From Podarcis tiliguerta (Eukaryota), in assembly GCA_965153285.1 (NCBI GenBank), contig OZ229117.1: a DNA stretch of 64,000 nucleotides. One strand, 5' to 3'. Both the position numbers and the translations under genes were made by a program. Positions 5,818 to 48,299 of the stretch are shown piece after piece (the stretch's first letter is position 1; each line of letters starts with the position of its first letter). The notes beneath the pieces were generated by a model. It did not search any database, was not told the origin of the DNA, and saw only the letters and a list, made by a program, of their open reading frames with translations.

Positions 5818-5962
5818 NNNNNNNNNNNNNNNNNNNNNNNNNNNNNNNNNNNNNNNNNNNNNNNNNNNNNNNNNNNNNNNNNNNNNNNNNNNNNNNNNNN
5901 NNNNNNNNNNNNNNNNNNNNNNNNNNNNNNNNNNNNNNNNNNNNNNNNNNNNNNNNNNNNNN
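5818..5962. other. Assembly gap (145 N) covering the EIF4G3 stop codon and start of the 3'UTR
   Basis: run of N. Confidence 0.99.
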
Positions 5963-17100: not shown

Positions 17101-20100
17101 TTTTCCATTTGATTGAAATACTGGTCCATTCGAGGCTAGAGGAAACACAGATGCTCTCACCATATTTCATAGGAACATGAAAAACTGCATTACAGTGGGG
17201 GGTGGGGATCCTTTCCAGCCTCTCCTGGGAAACCTTTCAGGGCCTGGAGCAATGAGGGTGACTCTTACCTTTGGACAGGGGCTAATCCCAGCCAGGCAAA
17301 AGTAAAGAGGTTTCTACGTAGAAATACATAAAAGTCACCCACCCGCCCCTGCACTTTCCAAGTGGCCTCACATTCCATCCACTCCTGGCGGGTATGAAGA
17401 AGGGCCAGTAAGGGGTATGGATCTAGCTTTTCTGAACAGTTAAGTTCTTTTCAGAACCAAAGAAGATGCATTTGGGTGTTCACTGTTCCCCGATGACACA
17501 AGGGGCAAAGCAACCCTACTGCCCCATCTTCTAGGGGAAAGCACGAGCGCCACTAAGCAGCCCACAGAAAAGGCTACAGCCACCAAGGGTCTTAGTGTGG
17601 GTGCCAGGTTCTTCTAACCTTGGCTTTCTCAAAGTCCAAGTCTTTGCCAATGGTAGTCAAGAGGCGGCAGAGGCACTCAAGGGACTCCTCGTCGTGGTTC
17701 TTCAGCAGCTTCACCACACAGTCGTGCATGATGGCCTCTGTCAGCATCTTCAGCTTGAAGAGCTCCCCAATGAACTTTATGTTGCCAATGGAGCGCCGCC
17801 GGGCCTTGTCCTTGGCTTCTTCCAGTTCATCGTGGAGCCGTGTCCTCTCCTCTGGCTGAGGGGCAGAGAAGGAAGGGGTGGTGAGAAAGGGCTGCCTGCC
17901 ACACCACAAGCCCATGGCCTCGCTTCCCAGGCCAGCAGCACCACAGGACTCCCATGTCTTGGGCTCCCTGCTCCTGGGAGCGCACAGAGGGTGCTCTGCA
18001 GACACTCACCGTTGTGGCAGCTTCCAGCTCCTTCTGCTTCTTCTCAAAGACATCGTCATCAGCTTTGTCCTTTTCAAATTCCTTCTGGCAACGATTCAGG
18101 AGTAGCTTCCGGAAGTTGACAAAGCTCCCGGGCTTATCCGCCATGGGCACCTTCAGCTGTGTGCAGCACGTGTCAAAAGGGCCAAGGAGGAGGACGGTGA
18201 GCACAAAAGAGGCAAAACAGGGCACTCTCATCACTTGCTGCATTCCATTCCTAACCAGCATTTTATCATTTTATTTATAAAAATATTTACGGGCCATTAT
18301 TCATAAAAACATATTAGAGCAAACAGACTGGCTCACAGCATTCATATTGAAAACAACACAGTAATATATACATATACATAATATATATATAAACTTTTAA
18401 TATCAAAGGTGAACTATTATGGAAAGGTACTATTATTATTTGCCTGCATGAGCCTGGTTCAGATAAGCATCTTCAGGACAACCTCCCCATAAACCCCTTT
18501 TCATTCTGGTGTCTAAAAGGCAGCAGATAACAGACCAGAGCAAACTCTTTGTCAATTCAGCCCAGTATTGTCTACCCTGAATGGCAGAGTATCTCCTGAG
18601 ACTCAGGCCAATAAGGTCCTTTTCAAATCATCCTTTTAACAGCAGATGGCAGGGATCAAATCTGGGCTTTCCTGCATGTTAAGAAGGAGCTCTGCCATTC
18701 CCCCGCTCTCACTGGGTATTCTCCTCTTCCAACTTCCCACACCACACTTACCGTGACGAGACACCTGCACATGTTTGCATAGGCCACAGAGAAGCTGGGT
18801 TCATCAATGGCTTTCTCGAACACAAGGTCGATGACGCCTTTCAACCTCTCTTCCGTGTCCACAGTTAGATCAGTCACTTGCTTCATCAGTTGATTGAACA
18901 TCTGTGGTGTCAACTTATTCAAGATGCTTCGGACCTTGCGGAATAGCTCCTGAAGGGAAAATGCAGGTGTTAAGGTGCAAAACTCAAATGAGGCCAAAGG
19001 CCTAGGAGAGCAACGGCCCAAGACAGCTGCTTTCAGTACCCAGGCATGGACGCTTCATTGCGCCGTATGCCCAAACCATCCCATGTCAGCTTGAACAGCT
19101 CCACCCATGTTCATAGCAACTCCAGGAGGAAAGGGGAAGACCGGCAGACAGGGAAGTTCAGACACAGCCAGGTTGAAACAACCAGACTCCAGAGCAGCAA
19201 AAGCTTTGTACAGTGGCAGATCAGAATGCAAATATATTCCACACAGGAAGTCTGTCCTTTGTGGGATCCCCCTTCTTTCCTCTCCCAAGGAAAGGCAGAA
19301 ACAGTCAAGTAGATAACACAGAGGAAATACACCTGCCAGAGAGGTAGTAGGTTGTCTGGTATCCTCACTTGTCCTTTTAAGCCAGGGAGGTCCAACATTT
19401 CATATCAAGTGGGCCGCAATCATATTTCAACAAGGAACCCGTGTGTTGGGGGGGGGGGAGGGGGAGGAGCGAGGCCAAAATTTGTGTGGCCTTCTCATAG
19501 CCGGGTGAGGCCCTCCCACCCCATTCCAAAGCAGGAAAGCACTAACCAGGCTTTGGGAATAAGGTGGCAGAACTCTAGGACCCTGTTAGAGAACACACCC
19601 CCAGCCCAGCACATCACTTGCTCAGCTTGGGAAGGCAGCACGAGGCCTGGAGAGGTGGGGGTGTCAAATGTTGCCATATGCGGCCTTTGGGCTGCACGTT
19701 GGACCACCCTGTTCTTAGCCATGCAAATAACGCTACAGCTACGGGTGGGTGTTAAAGTGGGGAGAAGGATCAGCCCAGCCAGCCTCACCTGGGTTTTGAT
19801 GCTCTCAGAGTCTTCCGCTTGCGTCTCACGCTTCAGACTCGGCTTCCAGGCATTCTCAGCTTTCTTCAGGTGTACATCCTCTTTGACACAAACCGTGATG
19901 ATCTTCCTGGGCTCCCGCCTCTGGCCTGGCTGAGATCTCCGCTGTCCAACGTTTAACAGCTAAGAGAAAAACCAGTCCCTTGAATGTTAAGTCCCTTTTA
20001 ACACAAAGAGGCTCAAACAACACATACAGTACGTCCAGCATCAAAGCAACCCTGCTCTGCCAACACTAGCATCTACTTGGGAATTTATGCAGGTGAATAT

Positions 20101-23100
20101 AGGAATGTAGCAAACTGCCTTATACAAAGTCCATCTTCAGGGTTTCAGACAGGGAAACTCTCTCAGCCCTACCTGGAGATGCCACTGAGGACTGAAGCAT
20201 GGAGTTACAGACCTTTCCCACAGAGAGAATATGAATCAAGACGGAATGCTGCCGGCAAGCAGTCCCTGCCACACAAAAAGCAGCCCCTCCTTTGCTACCT
20301 GAGGCTGAGCCTTCCTGACCATGCTTCACTGTGGCTGTGATAAACAACCCCAAGTTTTCAGGATACTGCACCTTCTGAGGTACAAGAGAACCAAACGTTT
20401 AAGAAGGGCAAGGTAGGAGGAGGAAGAAAGAGAAAGAGTGGGGCTTTTTTTGTTTTTTTTTAAAGGTGCTGGAGAACACACTTCCCCCTGCTGTCTGGCA
20501 AGTGAGCACAATAGCCCCAATCCTGCAACATGAGGTCCATATCCAAGCAAATAATCAGGACTTTGCCTGAGAGGCACACCAGAGTACACAGGCCAGTGTG
20601 ATCCAGATGCAGCTCCAACTGGCCCATGGTGCTGCTGAGGAGACAGTGCCAACAAGCCTAACTGGTGGGACAGAGCAGCGAACCACCAGCTCGCTCCTCC
20701 TGAGGTCTCACCATTCACACATGTTCTGCACCAATTAAGGCTAGCACGCAGGCACCAGCACCACATCAACTCCTTCGAGAATCCAGCCCTTGACATCCAA
20801 AATGCAGCAAGGAGCTTCTCTGTGTGCTTAAATTCTACACCAGCAGCTTGAGCTGTAGCACCTGCTACTGTAGGTCCCTTTCTACAAATCTTGGGGGAAG
20901 CAGTGATCATTATGGGATACCCTAACAGGCAGCAGGATACCTTGATTTTGGCACTTCAAAAAGTGTTTCATGGACATCCCCCAGCAGGAGTCTCTGCTCA
21001 ACACAGAGTAAAGCAAAATCATTTCCCAGTCCGGGCAGGAATAAGCAGCAAAGGAGCTGTACTAAGATCACAAACTTGTGAAGTTCACGATGCCGGCCAC
21101 ATCAGGTCTGACACAAGATCTTCGCTTCTGTCCCCCTGCCCCCCCCCATACCTCTCACTCCCAACCATCGCTCCCAACCTCTCATTCCCAAACACCACCT
21201 AAGAATGTTTAACATTTTGCAGTCAGACGTAAGGGCTGCCATTTCATGGTAGCCCTCAGCCAGCATTCACCTATCAGCACCACAATCAAGAACAATTCTA
21301 TCTCTGGCACCTTCTGTAACATAATGTCCCTTGTATTCTTTTCTAGTGTTAGAAAACTGAGCCACTGAGTTAGATTAAGGCCTTCCTCCTGGTGCATCTG
21401 GGGTGGCTTTTACAGCACAGCAGCTGGCTATTTTTCTTAAGCTATTTGTACCCATTTCTACTTCACCTCACCCAAGTCCTTTTTGAAAATAAGATGCATT
21501 TTTTAAAACCTGTTACCCGATTAACTGTGCCACCAGGTACCAAGGTTAGTGAAAAGCTGTTACTTTCCAAAATGCAGAAGGGGGGGAAAGCTGCCATTCA
21601 GCAAGGCTGAGATGGAGCATCCACGAGCTGCTAAATGCTCCAAGCCAAAAGAAAAACGAAGACAGGCCAAGCAGGACTTACCTGGTCTCCCCCTCTACAC
21701 AGGACTGCGAAGAGCAGCCCTAGGGCAGATCCAGCTCAGGCCAAAGTCCCAGTATGCCCTCTGCTGGTGCTGTCCCACCCACCACTGAAGAGACGGCAGC
21801 CTAGAGAAGAGTACAAGGCAAGGCTGGTGCCATTTCCATTACAGGCTTGTGCTCTGTGGGGTTGTTTGCTAGCTCCTCTGAAGACAGGAGGGCAGAGGAG
21901 AAGGCTTTGCAAAAAGACGCTCACAGTGAGGGAGGAAACTGGGGGCGGGGGCAGGATGGCTTACCCCTATGGTCAGGTTCCTCAGCTGTGGGTGAGATGA
22001 GACCAACAAAGGGCATGCTGGGGGCCCACACCGAGCAAGGGGCTGGAGTCCAGGTGGGGGCTGCACTTTGCAGGCCTGTAAAAAGAAAGAAAGGGGTGGG
22101 GGAGAGGAAGGTATTATCCACAGGCTGACACAGAAAGACCTGGCATGCCCAAGTAGGCGTCTGTTACAGCAGGTGGGCATCACAACTTCAGAAGGTTAGC
22201 TTAAATTTAACTCCAACCCTCCTACTTTTTGTCATTTCCCATTAAAAACCCATTTGCTGGATTGCTGTTCTGCAAGCCAAGAAGCAGATGCCACTTGCAA
22301 AGACCTTCTTTCACCTGACTCCCCATGATTATTTTAAGATTTCTCCTCTTCTTTTTCTTCTTCTTCCCCCCCCCGCCCCCGCCCCATATCGTCCCTGCTT
22401 GGCCTCCCCCTCCCCATTTCCAGGCCCCCACTATACAGAAACCAAAGGAGCTCAAGAAGCAGAACCTCAGCCGAATACTAAGCTGGTGGCCATGTTCCTG
22501 CCCACCTGTGTCAACAGAACCAATTGACTCCTTCAGAGGGGAAAACACTATTTTCCAGTCATATAGAGTCAAGGAAGCACAGGAGGAGCCTTACAGGTGA
22601 TAGAAAGACGCGAGAAGAAAGTAAGGGATGGGAAGGAAGACAGAATGAGGAAAGGCACAGACCAGCAGAGGGAGGAGGAAAGGGAAGAGGAGGAAGGAAA
22701 GAGAGAAAACGGAGAAAACGTGACTGCAGAAGAGCTCCCAAACTGGGAGCTGCTCCAGATTCTGGAGGGGAAAGGCAAAAGGTCATTTTTAACTGTGGAT
22801 GTAACTCTGACACTTACAGGTGTGCCCCGCCCTCCAGGGATTTGTCTTCCGAAATCTGCAAACGCTGGTGTGAAATCTGGACCCCGTGCCAATATCCGAG
22901 GATCCAAAGTTCGAAGAGGCAGTTTTGGCTGATTGATCTGTATTGGTAGAAAAATGTAAAGTTACGGGTAGCCATGCAGCAACCGTCTGCACAGACAGCA
23001 GCATTTGGTAGATACTCCCAAGTAGCCTCAAGAGCTACAGTTGAAAGCAAAAGGCACAGCCAATGACTCATCCTGCCCATCAAGATCCATTTCCCTTCTA

Positions 23101-24778
23101 ACTTGACCTCTGAGGGGGTGCCTGCTAAAGCTGAGCAAACTGAGGCATGGCACTTCAAGGCCATCTAACTACCCCACCACCAGAAAGCAAAGCTTCTTCA
23201 TGTCTGTTGACAGAGAGGCAGCTCAGGGGAAGGGAACTGGGGTTTTCCTGCTTCCTGAGGCTAGAAGAATGTTTTGGGGAAGATGAATACATATCATCTA
23301 GTTTTAAACCCAGTCCAGTGGCAGCATCTCCTCTTGTGCCTTATTAAATCGGAGCAGGTCTTCAAAATGTTGCAAAATCCAAGTTCTCAGTTTAAAACAT
23401 GCCTTTCTCTCGACCTTCAGCCGCCACCACAAACTCACTTCCTCTGCCTATATACTAGCCCCATACCTTGTCAAGGACCACATCGCTGATGGGCGGCAGC
23501 CCCTCCGGCTTCTGGATGCAGGCAGGCATGAACTGGAAGTCTAAGAGGAACTCCCGGTCGTACTGCTTCTTCCCTTCGGAGTCCAGGGGCTTCCACTGCT
23601 CTGTAATAACACCACCAGCCTCAGGTTGGGGCAATTCACTGCGCCATGTTTTCCCACCAAGGCCCCCTTGCTCCAATTAGAATTGTGGTCATGGGGGTCT
23701 TTCTCCTTTGCCTCACCCTGTCCCCATTTTGTGGGGAAGTCACGAAATGGTTGAGGGAATGAGTGCATGGCTCCATGGAAAAAGAATGTTGCACTGTGAT
23801 TGGGGAGGTCTGGCTTTGCATCCCTTTGGTCACAGGGAGCCTTGCTTGAGCCCTTTTTTGACTGAGGGACACCCCCCACCCAGGATCTCTTTGCACAGAA
23901 GAAAAAAAAGAGAAGGGTTTGAAGCTGAAGGGGAAGGAGCAGGAGCAGGACAGCACTGGGACATCCGTCCACAGGTTTTGTAGCTTTGTTCTAAAGAACC
24001 CTTGGGAAGCACAGTACAAGCAACAGTAGTGCATGCAGCAGAGGGACAGTTGTGCACTCTGCTCTGTGCAGATGCACCTGGAGGCTCAGGGAGCATAGGC
24101 TGCCCAAAGAGCTACAGGTGGTCACTTTTATCACACAGAGGGGCAATGCAGCAGAGATTTGCAGAGAAGATGGTAGTCTAGGTCCAGCAGATATTCTATA
24201 AAGAATTTATATGTTTCAGTCTTTCAAAGGGTCATTTTCAGGAATTGACCACCAATGAAGTGCTCTTTAAAGGGAGGCAAACATCTGGAGCCACAAGTCT
24301 GACATCCTGGAAACGAGAGCTCTGGCACCACATGAAAAATTAAAAGGCCTGGAAGGGAGTCGGGAGGCGTAAGTGCAGTGACGACTGCCAGCTAGGGCCC
24401 TGGAGGTGCCAGCGTGGGCTCCACCACGTGCCCTGCTGAATCCACACGGATTCAGAGTCAGAATCTCAGGGAACCAAGTAGCAAAGGCAGGTTTCCAGGC
24501 AGGAAAAGCACTGACATGGAGTGATGCCTTCCTCTCCAGAAATCTACTTCTGGAGAGGCCACCTCACATGGGGCTCACTCCACCTGCAGCTAGCTACTTC
24601 TTTCAAAATACTGGCAAGTCATAGCCAACTGTCCATTTCCGGCTCACGTGTACAAGAAATAAAGGCATGCCTGCCAACTGCATGAAGCAGCCCTTGAACT
24701 CCGGAGGTGGCCTGGAGATCTGACTCAAAGAATCACCCTGAGTCCAGAAGCTGACACCAAGCCCTCTGCTAGGAAGGT

Positions 24779-45500: not shown

Positions 45501-48299
45501 AAATATCTGATCAGAGAAGCATAAAGCATTAAGCATGTCTACTTCTGGTTAAATAGGTTGAGGGATAGAAAGTCTATATTCCCAGAAAATCAGCAAATGC
45601 ACATCAGTAACAGACCAAAAAAACTGGTGTTCATCTGTCCAAAAGCAAAAGTACCTGTCTTATCACTGTTCCACAGGAAGTATCACTTCTAAACAGCTCA
45701 GAAATCAGAGCCAGATAGCTGCAACTTAATAAAATTATGTGAAAACCAACGGCCCAGTAAACATGTTATATGAAAAATAAATAAAACTTCAACGTTAGTG
45801 GGAGGAAAAAAGAAAGACCCTAGTCTATTTTGCACTTGTCACCATTGGCTATTGGCTGCATAATTCCTGCGGACAGAATTCTTTCTCTCTGCCTCTCTCT
45901 CTCTGCCCCTCTTTCTATTAAGTAACTGTAAGCAACAGAACAAACTGTAGTCACTGCTGGCTCAGATTAAAAATAGGTTTCCTTTTCCCCTTTGCCTGGA
46001 GTTACAATTTTTGCCTGCCAGATGCTGGTCTTGCTTCCAATTCCTTCTGTGCATATTTGGCAGGGGGCCCCCTCTCCCGCCATGGGTTAAAGCTGCGTTG
46101 TGGGCACACTGGCTGTGGCCATTTGAAAACGAAACCTCCCACTATAGCTCTTCTCTTCCCCACTTCAGCATTTTCGCTACGAAGGCCAAATTGCTTTAAA
46201 AAGAAACAAAAACCTGTTGCAATTTAGAAATTCACTGAAAAGTTTTTAAAGTCTTCCCAACTGGAATTAGCATGCAGAGTGTGAGGCACTGGCCCTGCTG
46301 TAACAGAAAACCTGCCTGGGAATGACACCAAGCTACCTGAATGGCAAAGGTAGCCGTGTCGAGGCAGAGGCTGTGCAATTGCCAATGGCCCTTGAATGCA
46401 GAAATAGATCGGAGTAAGCTGAAGGGCAGCTATGGGAAGAAGAACTAGGGTCCCTTCATTTGCCAGCACAAAACCAACTCCAGGGCCCACCAGCTCCCTC
46501 AGCTGGGGCTCTGGTGCCATAGTGGGTGGGGGGCTGTCTCTCTTTCTCTCTCTCTCGCTCTCCCTCGCTCACCCTCCCCCAAGCCTCCCTTCAGGGCCAC
46601 AAAGGGGGGACGGGGAGAATAAACCAATGGAAACCAAGCCCAGAACGAAATGCAAGAGCTGCTCAGCCTAGCCCATTTTGCATTTGTTTTGGACTTGCGA
46701 GGGGAGGAGGAGAGGTGAGTGGGGGAAATGAAATGTTATGTGAGCAATTTTTAGTCATGGGGTGGTAATGATCACAAAACGTGACGATGGCAGAAGACTG
46801 CACGCAGGGTAATATTTTAGAGGAGGGATTGTTCATGACCACAGAAAAATGGCTGACGTTATAGGTAGCTTCTTCCGTCTTAAGGTTTCTGCCAAAATTG
46901 GGGAAAGTTCCTGTTTTGAGGAGTTCTTGCCAATTTCCCTCGAGTGACTAATCCAATCAAATGCAAATCCCCCACAAGGGCTAGAAAAGTAAATCTCAGG
47001 TACCTGATCACTCAGACCACCTGAAAAATTTGTAACAGGGTTATTGGGTTGTGGCTGTTGTGGGTTTTTTTAAGGAGGGGGCACCCTGCCTCAATTTATT
47101 CCTGCCACCACCTTTGACAGCCTTGGCCCCTTCCAAACTGCCGCTGAATGCGGCAGCCCGCAAGACACAGCGGCTTAAAGCAGAGATCGGATCAGTGCTT
47201 TTCTGTAGATCAGTCAACAATGTGGTCAAAAAATGAAACCAAAAAAAGCAACAGAACTGAAAGGGGTGCCGCGGGGGCACGACTGCCTGCAAGAAGGGAG
47301 TACAGTTTGTTATATTGCTTACAATGCAGTATTTTATCCAGCCTCTTCCCGCCAAGGACCTGTAAACCGGACTCTGTTCCAAAACCTTCCTCCGCTTCCA
47401 GTTGTCTGGGCAATGTACTGGCACTGCTCTGCTGGGCTGTCAAGAAAACTGGTTTAGAGACACGGCTCTCGAGTCAGACTCTCCCCTCTCGTTTCAGCCA
47501 TGAATGTTTCAGCTCTTGCTTTTTGCGCATCGTAACAGGGAGGAACATGCCCTACTACAGTAAGGGTGGCTGGGGATGGAAAGGTGTCCCTTCTGCTGCT
47601 CAATACCAGTTTGTCATAGAGCAGGATTGTGGCCAACTACTGGGGCTGAGTGAGGAGGGAATGAGCTGGAGGGTCCTTTTCTAGACAAAAAACAAGAGTG
47701 TGCAGCTGGAACCAGCAGGGCTGTGAGCACAGGAGCCCAGAATTGCATTGGCCGCAGGAAACAAGTTTCTCCTTCCCCACTCGCTACAAGCCCTTTAAAG
47801 AAGGGGGCAGTAAAAGGTAAAGACACAAAGGGAGGGGGTGTCCATGCATCTATCACACAACAGCCACCACCAGAAGACACACCCTTGAAAGGCACAGGTT
47901 GTATCACTCAAACTTATGATGCAAGGTGGTATGGATCAACACAAGAGATTGAAGCCGGGCTCAGGGCCCCCTCCGGAAGCAGGGCACCAGTACCGTAGGC
48001 AATGACAGAAGTGCCCAGGAGTAGGCATTTACAGGCTTCTGGAGAGCAGGCAGGCAACTCAAAAAAGGACCTGACTCTTCATCTCTGAGAGCCGCAGAGG
48101 GCTTCAACACTACGTCACTTGTGCCACCTGGAAGCAGAGGGGAAGTCCTTCGGGTGCCTTTTTCTCAGGGAAGCTACTCGCAAAAAGGTTAGGAAGTGCA
48201 ACGCAATGGCTTTGCTGGACGGCTGGACAGATGCAGCACAACACGCAGGCAAAATAAGGGCTCCCTTACCGGCGAGCGCGTCTGAGGCTGGGTGCTCAT
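5963..48299 (-). CDS. EIF4G3: Eukaryotic translation initiation factor 4 gamma 3 (eIF4GII), spliced CDS span from the first in-frame ATG (48299) to the N gap containing the stop; about 1,690 aa with all cassette exons
   Basis: 34 exons with GT-AG boundaries and consistent phases. They encode [10 protein letters not shown], the PABP-binding segment, YDREFLL, MIF4G, MA3 and W2. The C-terminus [33 protein letters not shown] is the EIF4G3 type rather than EIF4G1, judged from recalled mammalian sequences. Confidence 0.97.
6313..6670. mobile_element. Tc1/mariner (pogo/Tigger-like) MITE
   Basis: TIR CAGTGGTGCCTCGCAAGACG / CGTCTTGCGGGGCACCACTG, TA target duplication, many internal CGTCTTGCG repeats. 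Confidence 0.9.
6916..7185 (-). mobile_element. 5'-truncated retroposon (probably an L1 3' end) with 14-bp TSD TCCTCCATTTCTCT
   Basis: direct repeats 6902-6915 and 7186-7199; A-rich tail on minus strand. Confidence 0.6.
7490..7636 (-). CDS. EIF4G3: EIF4G3 W2 exon [25 protein letters not shown]...KLDQPP (147 nt)
   Basis: ccag|TG...CCGA|gtaagt. Confidence 0.96.
7823..8552. mobile_element. Longer non-autonomous member of the same pogo-like family, opposite orientation, with an internal direct repeat of about 60-80 bp
   Basis: ends CTGTATTTTTTGCACCATAACAC and GTGTTATAGAACGAAAAATACGG flanked by TA; subterminal similarity to 27535-27794. Confidence 0.8.
9463..9544 (-). CDS. EIF4G3: EIF4G3 W2 exon [27 protein letters not shown] (82 nt)
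   Basis: ttcag|GCT...ATAG|gtgagt. Confidence 0.96.
10149..10295 (-). CDS. EIF4G3: EIF4G3 exon KLDFTETD...EQIFDWVE (147 nt)
   Basis: tgcag|AAG...GAG|gtacaa. Confidence 0.96.
10554..10652 (-). CDS. EIF4G3: EIF4G3 exon [33 protein letters not shown] (99 nt)
   Basis: ttctag|AGC...CAG|gtgagt. Confidence 0.96.
11167..11248 (-). CDS. EIF4G3: EIF4G3 exon [27 protein letters not shown] (82 nt)
   Basis: tgcag|A...ATG|gtaagt. Confidence 0.96.
11485..11888. mobile_element. Old hAT-type MITE
   Basis: CAGGGGTGGCAA start; imperfect 8-bp TSD CCTTAAGG/CCCCAAGG. Confidence 0.5.
12048..12173 (-). CDS. EIF4G3: EIF4G3 MA3 exon [42 protein letters not shown] (126 nt)
   Basis: cttag|G...AC|gtaagc. Confidence 0.96.
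12331..12503 (-). CDS. EIF4G3: EIF4G3 MA3 exon EAMQCVEEL...KQDFFKG (173 nt)
   Basis: acag|GAA...GG|gttggt. Confidence 0.96.
12736..12851 (-). CDS. EIF4G3: EIF4G3 exon [39 protein letters not shown], start of MA3 (116 nt)
   Basis: aacag|CC...AAG|gtaagg. Confidence 0.96.
13177..13528 (-). mobile_element. Sauria SINE (Squam1-type), near full length, 12-bp TSD GGACATAAATTA
   Basis: (ACCTTT)n tail, B box GGTTCGAATCC; TSD at 13165-13176 and 13529-13540. Confidence 0.92.
13642..13865 (-). CDS. EIF4G3: EIF4G3 exon [11 protein letters not shown]...SKAKET (224 nt)
   Basis: cacag|T...ACTG|gtgagc. Confidence 0.95.
14104..14135. repeat. (TAC)n microsatellite
   Basis: direct observation. Confidence 0.95.
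14179..14296 (-). CDS. EIF4G3: EIF4G3 exon [19 protein letters not shown]...SRRALTS (118 nt)
   Basis: tgcag|AT...AG|gtaagt; NRFSAL motif. Confidence 0.95.
14540..14845 (+). mobile_element. CR1 LINE 3' fragment
   Basis: translates [33 protein letters not shown], typical CR1 ORF2 C-terminus. Confidence 0.85.
15054..15139 (-). other. Intronic hairpin, pre-miRNA-like
   Basis: 19-bp perfect inverted repeat (15062-15080 / 15113-15131), extendable to about 34 bp with G-U pairs on the transcribed strand. Confidence 0.5.
15487..15580 (-). CDS. EIF4G3: EIF4G3 exon [31 protein letters not shown] (94 nt)
   Basis: ttcag|CCC...ATTG|gtgagt. Confidence 0.96.
15999..16093 (-). CDS. EIF4G3: EIF4G3 exon [32 protein letters not shown] (95 nt)
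   Basis: tgcag|GT...AAG|gtttgt. Confidence 0.96.
16544..16676 (-). CDS. EIF4G3: EIF4G3 exon [22 protein letters not shown]...KEKRRP (133 nt)
   Basis: acag|TGT...CCTG|gtaagt. Confidence 0.96.
17031..17135 (-). CDS. EIF4G3: EIF4G3 MIF4G exon [35 protein letters not shown] (105 nt)
   Basis: tctag|CCT...CAG|gtacgt. Confidence 0.97.
17619..17855 (-). CDS. EIF4G3: EIF4G3 MIF4G exon [13 protein letters not shown]...DFEKAK (237 nt)
   Basis: ctcag|CCA...AAG|gttaga. Confidence 0.97.
18010..18156 (-). CDS. EIF4G3: EIF4G3 MIF4G exon [10 protein letters not shown]...ELEAATT (147 nt)
   Basis: acag|CTG...ACG|gtgagt. Confidence 0.97.
18752..18949 (-). CDS. EIF4G3: EIF4G3 MIF4G exon [16 protein letters not shown]...MCRCLVT (198 nt)
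   Basis: ttcag|GAG...ACG|gtaagt. Confidence 0.97.
19789..19959 (-). CDS. EIF4G3: EIF4G3 exon [21 protein letters not shown]...ESIKTQ (171 nt)
   Basis: cttag|CTG...CAG|gtgagg. Confidence 0.95.
21682..21800 (-). other. EIF4G3: Candidate poison (PTC/NMD) exon, 119 nt, that is an inverted diverged copy of the 111-nt cassette exon
   Basis: tactcttctctag|GCT...CAG|gtaagt (consensus donor); reads [26 protein letters not shown] with TAG at 21722-21720; complementary to 21965-22079. Confidence 0.6.
21965..22075 (-). CDS. EIF4G3: EIF4G3 in-frame cassette exon (111 nt) [37 protein letters not shown]
   Basis: ttctttttacag|GCC...GGG|gtaagc; phase 0-0, no stop; resembles a recalled 37-aa alternative exon of mammalian eIF4G3 (CKVQ...CPPLVMSHPPMKSL). 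Confidence 0.85.
22818..22937 (-). CDS. EIF4G3: EIF4G3 exon [40 protein letters not shown] (120 nt)
   Basis: tacag|ATC...CCT|gtaagt. Confidence 0.96.
23467..23600 (-). CDS. EIF4G3: EIF4G3 exon with eIF4E-binding motif YDREFLL (23562-23542) (134 nt)
   Basis: tacag|AG...AAG|gtatgg; canonical YxxxxL-phi motif. Confidence 0.97.
24780..24839. repeat. (CT)n microsatellite
   Basis: direct observation. Confidence 0.95.
25165..25417 (-). CDS. EIF4G3: EIF4G3 exon [18 protein letters not shown]...CQYKP (253 nt)
   Basis: ttcag|CCT...CCAG|gtaagt. Confidence 0.93.
26237..26325 (-). CDS. EIF4G3: EIF4G3 exon [30 protein letters not shown] (89 nt)
   Basis: ttgtag|CC...GAG|gtaagg; phase bridges the neighbouring exons. 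Confidence 0.9.
27535..27794. mobile_element. Tc1/mariner (pogo-like) MITE with internal palindrome (27621-27699)
   Basis: TIR CCGTATTTTTCGCTCTATAAGAC / GTCTTATAGAGCAAAAAATACGG, TA TSD. Confidence 0.9.
29585..29942 (-). mobile_element. Sauria SINE (Squam1-type), full length, TSD AAAGATGTAGGATAAAAA
   Basis: highly similar to the copy at 13177; direct repeats at 29569-29586 and 29945-29962. Confidence 0.93.
30574..31428 (-). CDS. EIF4G3: EIF4G3 large Pro/Glu-rich exon (855 nt) [14 protein letters not shown]...SKKGPGA
   Basis: ccccag|AA...GCAG|gtgagt; phase 1-1, open frame (ORF 30449..31345). Confidence 0.94.
34530..34638 (-). CDS. EIF4G3: EIF4G3 exon (Q)[35 protein letters not shown]; NAGNAG acceptor (34638 or 34635)
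   Basis: cccag|cag|CTG...CAAG|gtgggt. Confidence 0.92.
35310..35432 (-). CDS. EIF4G3: EIF4G3 exon [20 protein letters not shown]...PTPPQ, PABP-binding region (123 nt)
   Basis: ttccag|ATC...CAG|gtaact; conserved eIF4G PABP-binding motif. Confidence 0.96.
35969..36072 (-). CDS. EIF4G3: EIF4G3 exon [35 protein letters not shown] (104 nt)
   Basis: ccgcag|GG...ACG|gtaaga. Confidence 0.94.
36558..36600. repeat. (CA)n microsatellite
   Basis: direct observation. Confidence 0.95.
37549..37663 (-). CDS. EIF4G3: EIF4G3 exon [38 protein letters not shown] (115 nt)
   Basis: ttcag|TAT...TATG|gtaaga. Confidence 0.95.
38245..38432 (+). mobile_element. tRNA-Cys-like SINE (Squam2-like); related degraded copies at about 18540-18710 (-) and 24875-25020 (-)
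   Basis: tRNA-like head ...GTGGCAGAGC...GCATGCAGAAGG...CAGGTTTGATCCC; shared body GCCAGTCAGTGTAGACAATACTGAGCT. Confidence 0.7.
39056..39235 (-). CDS. EIF4G3: EIF4G3 exon [13 protein letters not shown]...PQYCIPQ (180 nt)
   Basis: ctccag|TTT...CAG|gtaagg. Confidence 0.95.
39867..39887 (-). CDS. EIF4G3: EIF4G3 neural microexon (21 nt) GGFRPIQ
   Basis: ttgaag|GGAGGATTCAGACCCATCCAG|gtaact; UGC motifs upstream; known eIF4G3 microexon peptide. Confidence 0.92.
40795..40892. repeat. Perfect 49-bp tandem duplication
   Basis: 40795-40843 identical to 40844-40892. Confidence 0.95.
44120..44155 (-). CDS. EIF4G3: EIF4G3 small exon (36 nt) [12 protein letters not shown]
   Basis: long polypyrimidine tract, ctcag|TTT...CAG|gtacag; like mammalian FAAGPRPPHHQ. 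Confidence 0.88.
47323..47436 (-). CDS. EIF4G3: EIF4G3 cassette exon (114 nt) [38 protein letters not shown]
   Basis: ttgacag|CCC...ATT|gtaagc; in frame; resembles an alternative exon of long mammalian isoforms. Confidence 0.85.

Follow-up and report, generated by a model that had tools for sequence, protein, structure and literature searches.

An inverted copy of an EIF4G3 coding exon is a candidate poison exon and pairs with its parent in a predicted splice-site hairpin

A 37-codon coding exon of EIF4G3 and, shortly downstream of it, an inverted copy that carries a stop codon lie close together in the stretch of 64,000 nucleotides analysed here (the window). We put at about even the chance that an inverted duplication supplied both a poison exon and an RNA hairpin which, by looping out or masking splice sites, would control the two exons. 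The existence of the repeat, of the coding exon, and of the splice signals and stop in its copy is a matter of observation; the hairpin and its consequences are set out below in conditional terms, together with the alternatives against which they were weighed.

Nearly all of the coding sequence of an EIF4G3 orthologue lies on the minus strand of the window. In a local tblastn search, for which positions 18873-18919 were masked, EIF4G3 proteins from tuatara, turtle, alligator and bird could be followed through successive exons from approximately 39.2 kb down to 5.9 kb; identity is 76-82% and much the same for all four. The exon pair sits between the exons at 22818 and 19959, that is, after the eIF4E-binding motif (located in an exon near 23464-23601) and before the MIF4G domain, and more than 15 coding exons follow the inverted copy (hereafter the mirror exon) within the window. 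The VRG(D/E)PIKQ microexon of alligator and birds gave no pattern match between 22930 and 23470. In order of transcription, the features of the region are as follows.

22818..22940 (start approximate), minus strand: upstream constitutive EIF4G3 exon, ending in phase 0 with a CCT/GTAAGT donor (tblastn, with sequence and frames)
21965..22075, minus strand: coding exon, 111 nt, 37 codons (sequence and frames; EIF4G3 annotations of birds, turtles, alligators and tuatara)
21801..21964, minus strand: intron between the coding and mirror exons, 164 nt, part of the hairpin loop (sequence and fold)
21682..21800, minus strand: mirror exon, 119 nt (sequence; its sense translation corresponds to the C-termini of truncated isoforms from Gopherus, Chelonoidis and two species of Alligator)
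19789..19959 (end approximate), minus strand: next constitutive EIF4G3 exon, with tcttag/CTGTTAAAC at its acceptor (tblastn, with sequence and frames)

The initial annotation took the 111-nt exon to be a coding exon of EIF4G3, and this is borne out both by its annotation in sauropsids and by its presence in one spliced bird transcript. The exon is preceded by a long pyrimidine tract and a …tttttacag/ acceptor, ends at a GGG/gtaagc donor, and is in frame with both of its neighbours. When the 37 residues were searched against 1.8 billion representative proteins, only EIF4G3-type matches came back. A targeted search located the exon in the annotated EIF4G3 of dozens of birds, several turtles, Alligator and Sphenodon; in the annotated sauropsid proteins it is always in frame and always embedded in the same flanking sequence (…GGR… before it). 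Direct transcript evidence comes from P0079, a 5.8-kb Logan contig from a bird that encodes a 1481-residue EIF4G3 and contains the exon in spliced form. Between the window and a galliform, 29 of the 37 residues are retained. A junction that skips the exon, GGRGTP/LLNVGQ, would also be in frame, and is presumably the sequence of the canonical human EIF4G3 protein. Metagenome scans with the exon alignment and with P0012 gave no match in either case.

The mirror exon has the makings of a functional exon. Judged by consensus, without a scoring matrix, its acceptor is pyrimidine-rich (…ctcttctctag/) and its donor, CAG/gtaagt, is a full consensus site. Read from either upstream exon it encodes 26 residues followed by an in-frame TAG at codon 27, and its length of 119 nt is not a multiple of three, which shifts the frame; from the sequence, inclusion would place a premature stop far upstream of the last exon junction. 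Four predicted isoforms read through the coding exon into the mirror-exon peptide and then stop.

Alligator sinensis X16, XP_025059416.1: predicted isoform with the mirror exon
An Alligator X11, XP_059572592.1: predicted isoform with the mirror exon
Gopherus flavomarginatus X23: predicted isoform with the mirror exon
Chelonoidis abingdonii X15: predicted isoform with the mirror exon

The mirror-exon tail of these isoforms ends in [AV]EGMLGRWPERDPR[WG]VCTLQTCGKGE[KT]SC and a stop, and the tail peptide matches the mirror exon of the window at 63%. Joining the window's mirror exon to the next exon gives AG+CTGTTAA, that is serine, cysteine, stop, which is the ending found in the tortoise and alligator models. 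Because this ending corresponds to AG joined to the start of the next exon, those models employ the copy as an internal cassette with the same donor, and since the predicted isoforms include it and terminate there it behaves in them as a poison exon. Comparison of the window with a galliform showed 26 of 39 mirror-exon positions retained, counted in an arbitrary frame; in three read-through open reading frames from bird assemblies (P0004, P0132 and P0134) the mirror element lies in another frame and its length is unchanged relative to the window.

The coding exon occurs without the mirror exon in many annotated productive isoforms, so inclusion of the former need not bring in the latter. The mutually exclusive use of the two exons that had been suggested is contradicted by the annotation: the four annotated isoforms with the mirror exon are the only models that use the copy, and all four hold both exons.

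A gapped alignment of the inverted repeat runs from about 22114 to 21960 against 21678-21809 and matches in 96 of 129 columns, which makes the repeat longer than the initial annotation had stated. On the acceptor side the homology takes in approximately 44 nt of the intron that precedes the coding exon, and on the other side it continues beyond the donor of that exon; as both splice-site flanks are covered, the unit copied was the whole exon unit. The pairings described earlier were recovered on recounting. Block 1 (22058-22079 with 21699-21720) contains 19 Watson-Crick pairs among 22, and block 2 (21979-22022 with 21748-21791) contains 33 Watson-Crick and 6 G-U pairs together with 3 A-C and 2 other oppositions, 44 in all; between the blocks lies the UCCAGC/GCUGGA helix, at 22042-22047 with 21730-21735, and the downstream donor AGGUA (21679-21683) pairs with UACCU (22109-22113). 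The spacing of 164 nt between exon and copy holds, and the copy, when read on the plus strand, still spells a 17-residue peptide resembling that of the exon.

Both alignment scores and duplex energies were compared to backgrounds sampled across the whole window. The inverted local alignment scores 23, as against 9.2±1.8 for window pairs of the same geometry, of which 6 of 2973 reach 23. The duplex energy is -145.3 kcal/mol; same-geometry controls average -61.2±12.4 kcal/mol and none of 2484 reaches the observed value, while arms that have been shuffled average -79.9±6.6 kcal/mol and again none (of 1000) reaches it. The inverted repeat is far beyond chance. An argument for chance complementarity between two GC-rich, proline-codon-rich stretches could be built on the GC-richness of the region and on the fact that shuffled arms already attain about -80 kcal/mol; it founders on the 2484 background pairs and 1000 shuffles, and on the recovery of the same complementarity from the amino-acid sequences of other orders. 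The alignment score, the duplex-energy controls and the codon-degenerate register test described below rule it out, and we treat its probability as practically nil.

Palindromic architecture is also a property of hairpin transposons, and the unit of approximately 450 nt might be an ancient MITE-like DNA transposon whose arms were exonised. A weak Rfam match to MIMT1_1 (MER1-repeat-containing region) at 22006-22098, with 22.8 bits and E = 0.06-0.19, lends this some colour; the match, however, is G-rich and falls under the gathering score of 45, and Rfam returned sub-threshold matches only, the other being SNORD15 at 12.8 bits. Neither arm has a second copy in the 64 kb, in line with the earlier statement that no like repeat is found in the window, and one of the arms is a coding exon that is in frame and deeply conserved. 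We consider a transposon origin highly improbable.

The reverse complementarity of the two arms allows the nascent transcript to form an imperfect hairpin of approximately 94 bp. Folding of the region had been proposed as a check in the initial annotation; the minimum free energy (MFE) structure contains the hairpin, with z = -4.09 for the 501 nt folded. Its 94 arm-to-arm pairs have a mean probability of 0.92, and between 74 and 94 of them persist when the sequence is folded in contexts of 1-2 kb. The two exons alone give a duplex of -111.2 kcal/mol. The arms are composed as follows.

21979..22119, minus strand: hairpin arm A, comprising 44 nt of the upstream intron (with UACCU and the polypyrimidine tract), the AG acceptor and coding-exon nt 1-97 (MFE pairs and pair probabilities)
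21674..21791, minus strand: hairpin arm B, comprising mirror-exon nt 10-119, the GUAAG donor and three further intron bases (MFE fold)

The pairs of the fold uphold the view that the predicted duplex covers the acceptor of the coding exon and the donor of its copy. On the coding-exon side the stem buries the acceptor (22075-22080), the pyrimidine tract (22098-22105) and UACCU (22109-22113), which are paired with the 3' end of the mirror exon, a purine run (21686-21693) and the donor AGGUA (21679-21683). The loop holds the 3' end and donor of the coding exon, the 164-nt intron and the mirror acceptor.

The G-U pairs had been read as a sign that pairing is maintained on the transcribed strand, and this argument fails. 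The whole unit contains 10 G-U and 6 A-C oppositions, with no skew, and the antisense strand folds as well as the transcribed one: -218.6 versus -204.8 kcal/mol for 501 nt, with duplex energies of -142.2 and -145.3 kcal/mol, respectively. Given that the two classes are unskewed and that the antisense strand folds equally, the G-U count is no evidence for pairing.

In two of the A·C mismatches the A belongs to the coding exon (nt 7, the first base of Lys3, and nt 78), and this raises the matter of editing. In ADAR exon-ECS duplexes, such as that of the GRIA2 R/G site, a coding exon pairs with a conserved downstream complement. The EIF4G3 coding exon likewise faces a conserved complementary sequence downstream, and the mirror copy could act as the editing complementary sequence that lets ADAR recode the coding exon by A-to-I changes. 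Unlike in the exon-ECS duplexes, the complement in EIF4G3 has strong splice sites of its own and is annotated as an exon, a use that editing leaves unexplained; we regard this account as improbable.

Pairing in orthologues was tested from amino-acid sequences, allowing every synonymous codon, which means that only non-synonymous changes are visible. Applied to the whole diagonal the codon test proved too blunt, and a block-wise version was used instead. When nucleotides 54-97 of the coding exon were slid against each species' own mirror exon, both Gopherus and Alligator showed a single register with 0 of 44 impossible pairs; the next best register had 5, and the mean was 10.3-10.7 (sd approximately 3.3). 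The same test in two birds gave 2 of 44 impossible pairs, with 7 in the next best register. The partner of block 1 was located, again by the codon-degenerate test, near the 3' end of the mirror exon. By parsimony against the codons of the window, 39-40 of the 44 positions of block 2 are pairable in tortoise, alligator and bird, compared to 39 in the window, and the duplex in these animals is thus as good as, or slightly better than, that of the window. Judged from the encoded proteins, complementarity is conserved in the orthologues at a unique register. Because the arms are complementary in tortoise, alligator and birds, the mirror arrangement predates the split between the lineage of the window and that of turtles, birds and crocodilians. 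The old inverted duplication of the exon envisaged in the initial annotation finds support here: the copy is the reverse complement of the exon unit, and the complementarity is shared by these other animals.

Two pairs show compensatory change. The pair 22044/21733 is A-U in the window and C-G in tortoise, alligator and bird; 22060/21718 is C-G in the window and A-U in tortoise, the serine codon being ambiguous in the other species. Of 36 controls with a shifted register, 2 also show two double changes that remain compatible with pairing, and as covariation evidence for selected pairing the two pairs are suggestive only. Among single changes three keep a wobble pair and three to four break a pair in other lineages. 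Paired positions carry fewer forced changes, as expected from the manner in which the pairs were ascertained.

These data bear on a simpler explanation, in which the duplication is merely the origin of a conserved poison exon: protein constraint would have kept the coding arm, splicing-regulatory content the mirror arm, and pairing would be a passive relic. We think such a relic less likely than not. It accommodates the strong conservation of each arm on its own, the lack of strand asymmetry between G-U and A-C, the borderline covariation and the partial conservation, between the window and birds, of the start of the intervening intron, which is usual around regulated exons. It accommodates less readily two compensatory changes of transversion type and a stop-bearing exon whose perfect donor needs some form of repression; moreover, a duplex of -111 to -145 kcal/mol that covers two splice sites, its arms only 164 nt apart, would probably not be free of effect.

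The hairpin probably affects splicing, and we infer that the duplex forms in vivo and that the resulting change in splicing has the direction outlined here. In the account that we favor, an ancient local inverted duplication would have copied the 37-codon exon with both splice-site flanks, and the inverted copy, 164 nt downstream, would have turned into a stop-bearing poison exon. The hairpin would then serve as a loop-out or masking element over the two outer splice sites, with the inner sites left in the loop; when folded, it would silence the near-consensus poison exon and lower inclusion of the coding exon. Removal of the upstream intron, or opening of the stem, would expose the mirror donor and render both exons includable. 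As the mask of the mirror donor is partly intronic, and lies upstream of the coding exon, removal of that intron should expose the donor, and this would explain why the coding exon is present in all annotated mirror-exon isoforms. In transcripts that include both exons, translation would end prematurely, after the eIF4E-binding motif and before MIF4G, with nonsense-mediated decay or a truncated protein as the outcome.

Several described systems resemble this arrangement in part. Exon 3b of BRD2 and exon 5b of BRD3 are poison exons controlled by conserved complementary regions, as experimentally tested (PMC10789245), and by analogy they would be the closest tested precedent for the EIF4G3 pair. 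Common to these cases are a conserved stop-bearing cassette exon in a regulatory gene, a stable and conserved duplex placed near splice sites, and unproductive splicing as the expected read-out. The arms in BRD2 and BRD3 are, however, intronic and unrelated to the exons, whereas those of EIF4G3 are the coding and poison exons themselves, inverted duplicates of one another; and pairing in BRD2 and BRD3 has been tested by experiment, whereas that in EIF4G3 is known here from sequence and predicted folds. Inverted repeats can also cause loop-out exon skipping, both as inverted Alu pairs (PMC13019027) and as reverse complementary matches (PMC8330042), and in these too a stem can cause the skipping of exons that it encloses or covers. 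Such repeats are intronic, transposon-derived and mostly lineage-specific; the EIF4G3 repeat, in contrast, is exonic, single-copy in the window and common to the window species, birds, turtles and crocodilians. Lastly, competing RNA structures operate at duplicated mutually exclusive exons in Dscam1 (PMC12962786) and at exon 5a/5b of the SCN alpha genes (bioRxiv 10.1101/2025.08.16.670673), and there, as in EIF4G3, exon duplication creates sequence relations that RNA pairing can exploit for the choice of exons. In Dscam1 and SCN alpha the duplicates lie in tandem and share one orientation, both encode protein, and their use is mutually exclusive, whereas the EIF4G3 copy is inverted, non-coding and annotated together with the original. 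Literature searches on EIF4G3 found no description of the coding and mirror exon pair, and EIF4G3 is not among the entries in the text supplements of Kalmykova et al. 2021.

The protein concerned, eIF4G3, is a scaffold for cap-dependent translation that is required in mouse spermatogenesis and used in hypoxic translation. Since the stop is placed precisely after the eIF4E-binding motif and before MIF4G, inclusion of the mirror exon would either remove the mRNA or make a potential competitor fragment. A more elaborate proposal, which we think unlikely as a whole, is that the double-stranded RNA has been kept since before the lineage split as a switch: it would couple the coding exon to the poison exon and thereby set the dose of eIF4G3, or yield an eIF4E/PABP-binding fragment that lacks MIF4G, depending on RNA unwinding, on the speed of elongation or on editing activity. 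Were this true it would represent a new evolutionary route, in which one inverted exon duplication delivers a poison exon together with its own structural regulator. The cases described to date involve intronic complementary regions or pairs of transposons; pairing of exon against exon that arises from inverted duplication is a different matter, and pairs of exons and inverted copies could be sought systematically across other genes. A cryptic poison exon of human EIF4G3, 12b (73 nt, testis), is listed in PMC11632617. The literature searches brought up no eIF4G gene with a reported conserved module for unproductive splicing.

Two copies of the RBFOX-type motif GCAUG are found at the coding exon, the in-frame cassette exon of EIF4G3:

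22014-22018, minus strand: GCAUG copy 1, inside the coding exon
22144-22148, minus strand: GCAUG copy 2, approximately 70 nt upstream of the coding-exon acceptor

The exonic copy falls in the invariant PACP codons and within the palindrome GGGCAUGCCC. The mirror arm, the inverted, stop-bearing copy of the exon with which it is predicted to form a hairpin, carries GCAUAC at the counterpart of this motif in the window. When the translation from tortoise (EGML) is combined with that from birds (RACW), GGGCAUGCUGGG is implied at the mirror-arm position, and therefore the tortoise and bird lineages may possess GCAUG in both arms. Upstream of the coding exon, the 17 nt at 22134-22150 repeat the mirror core (21743-21759) in direct orientation at 76%; this upstream repeat could act as a competing pairing partner for the GCAUGCCC stretch of the coding exon.

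Similarity to birds is retained, in translation, over roughly 60 nt at the start of the intron 3' of the coding exon (21893-21964, minus strand), where an 18-residue window translation was compared with VSHIPPSFPIFAPFCRV. This similarity is flanking intronic conservation, a pattern known around regulated exons. The upstream intron contains long homopurine/homopyrimidine and C-rich runs at 22330-22400 (including …CCCCCCCCCGCCCCC…), for which the G-rich run at 21941-21956 provides a complement (repeat search pairs I4 and I6, 88–93%).

The Rfam family MIMT1_1, a MER1-repeat-containing lncRNA region, gave a weak match at 22006-22098 on the plus strand, scoring 22.8 bits where the family's gathering score is 45. 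The underlying sequence is G-rich, and the match is probably due to chance.

Elsewhere in the window, an ORF segment of 31 residues (47041-47424, minus strand) is near-identical to an N-terminal segment of isoform X16 of Alligator sinensis EIF4G3 (P0005), one of the predicted isoforms containing the mirror exon. It looks like a conserved element, either an alternative 5' exon or intronic sequence. The stretch 18873-18919 belongs to the MIF4G exon region.

The last coding exon, which encodes the end of the W2 domain, is broken by a run of 145 Ns (5818-5962).
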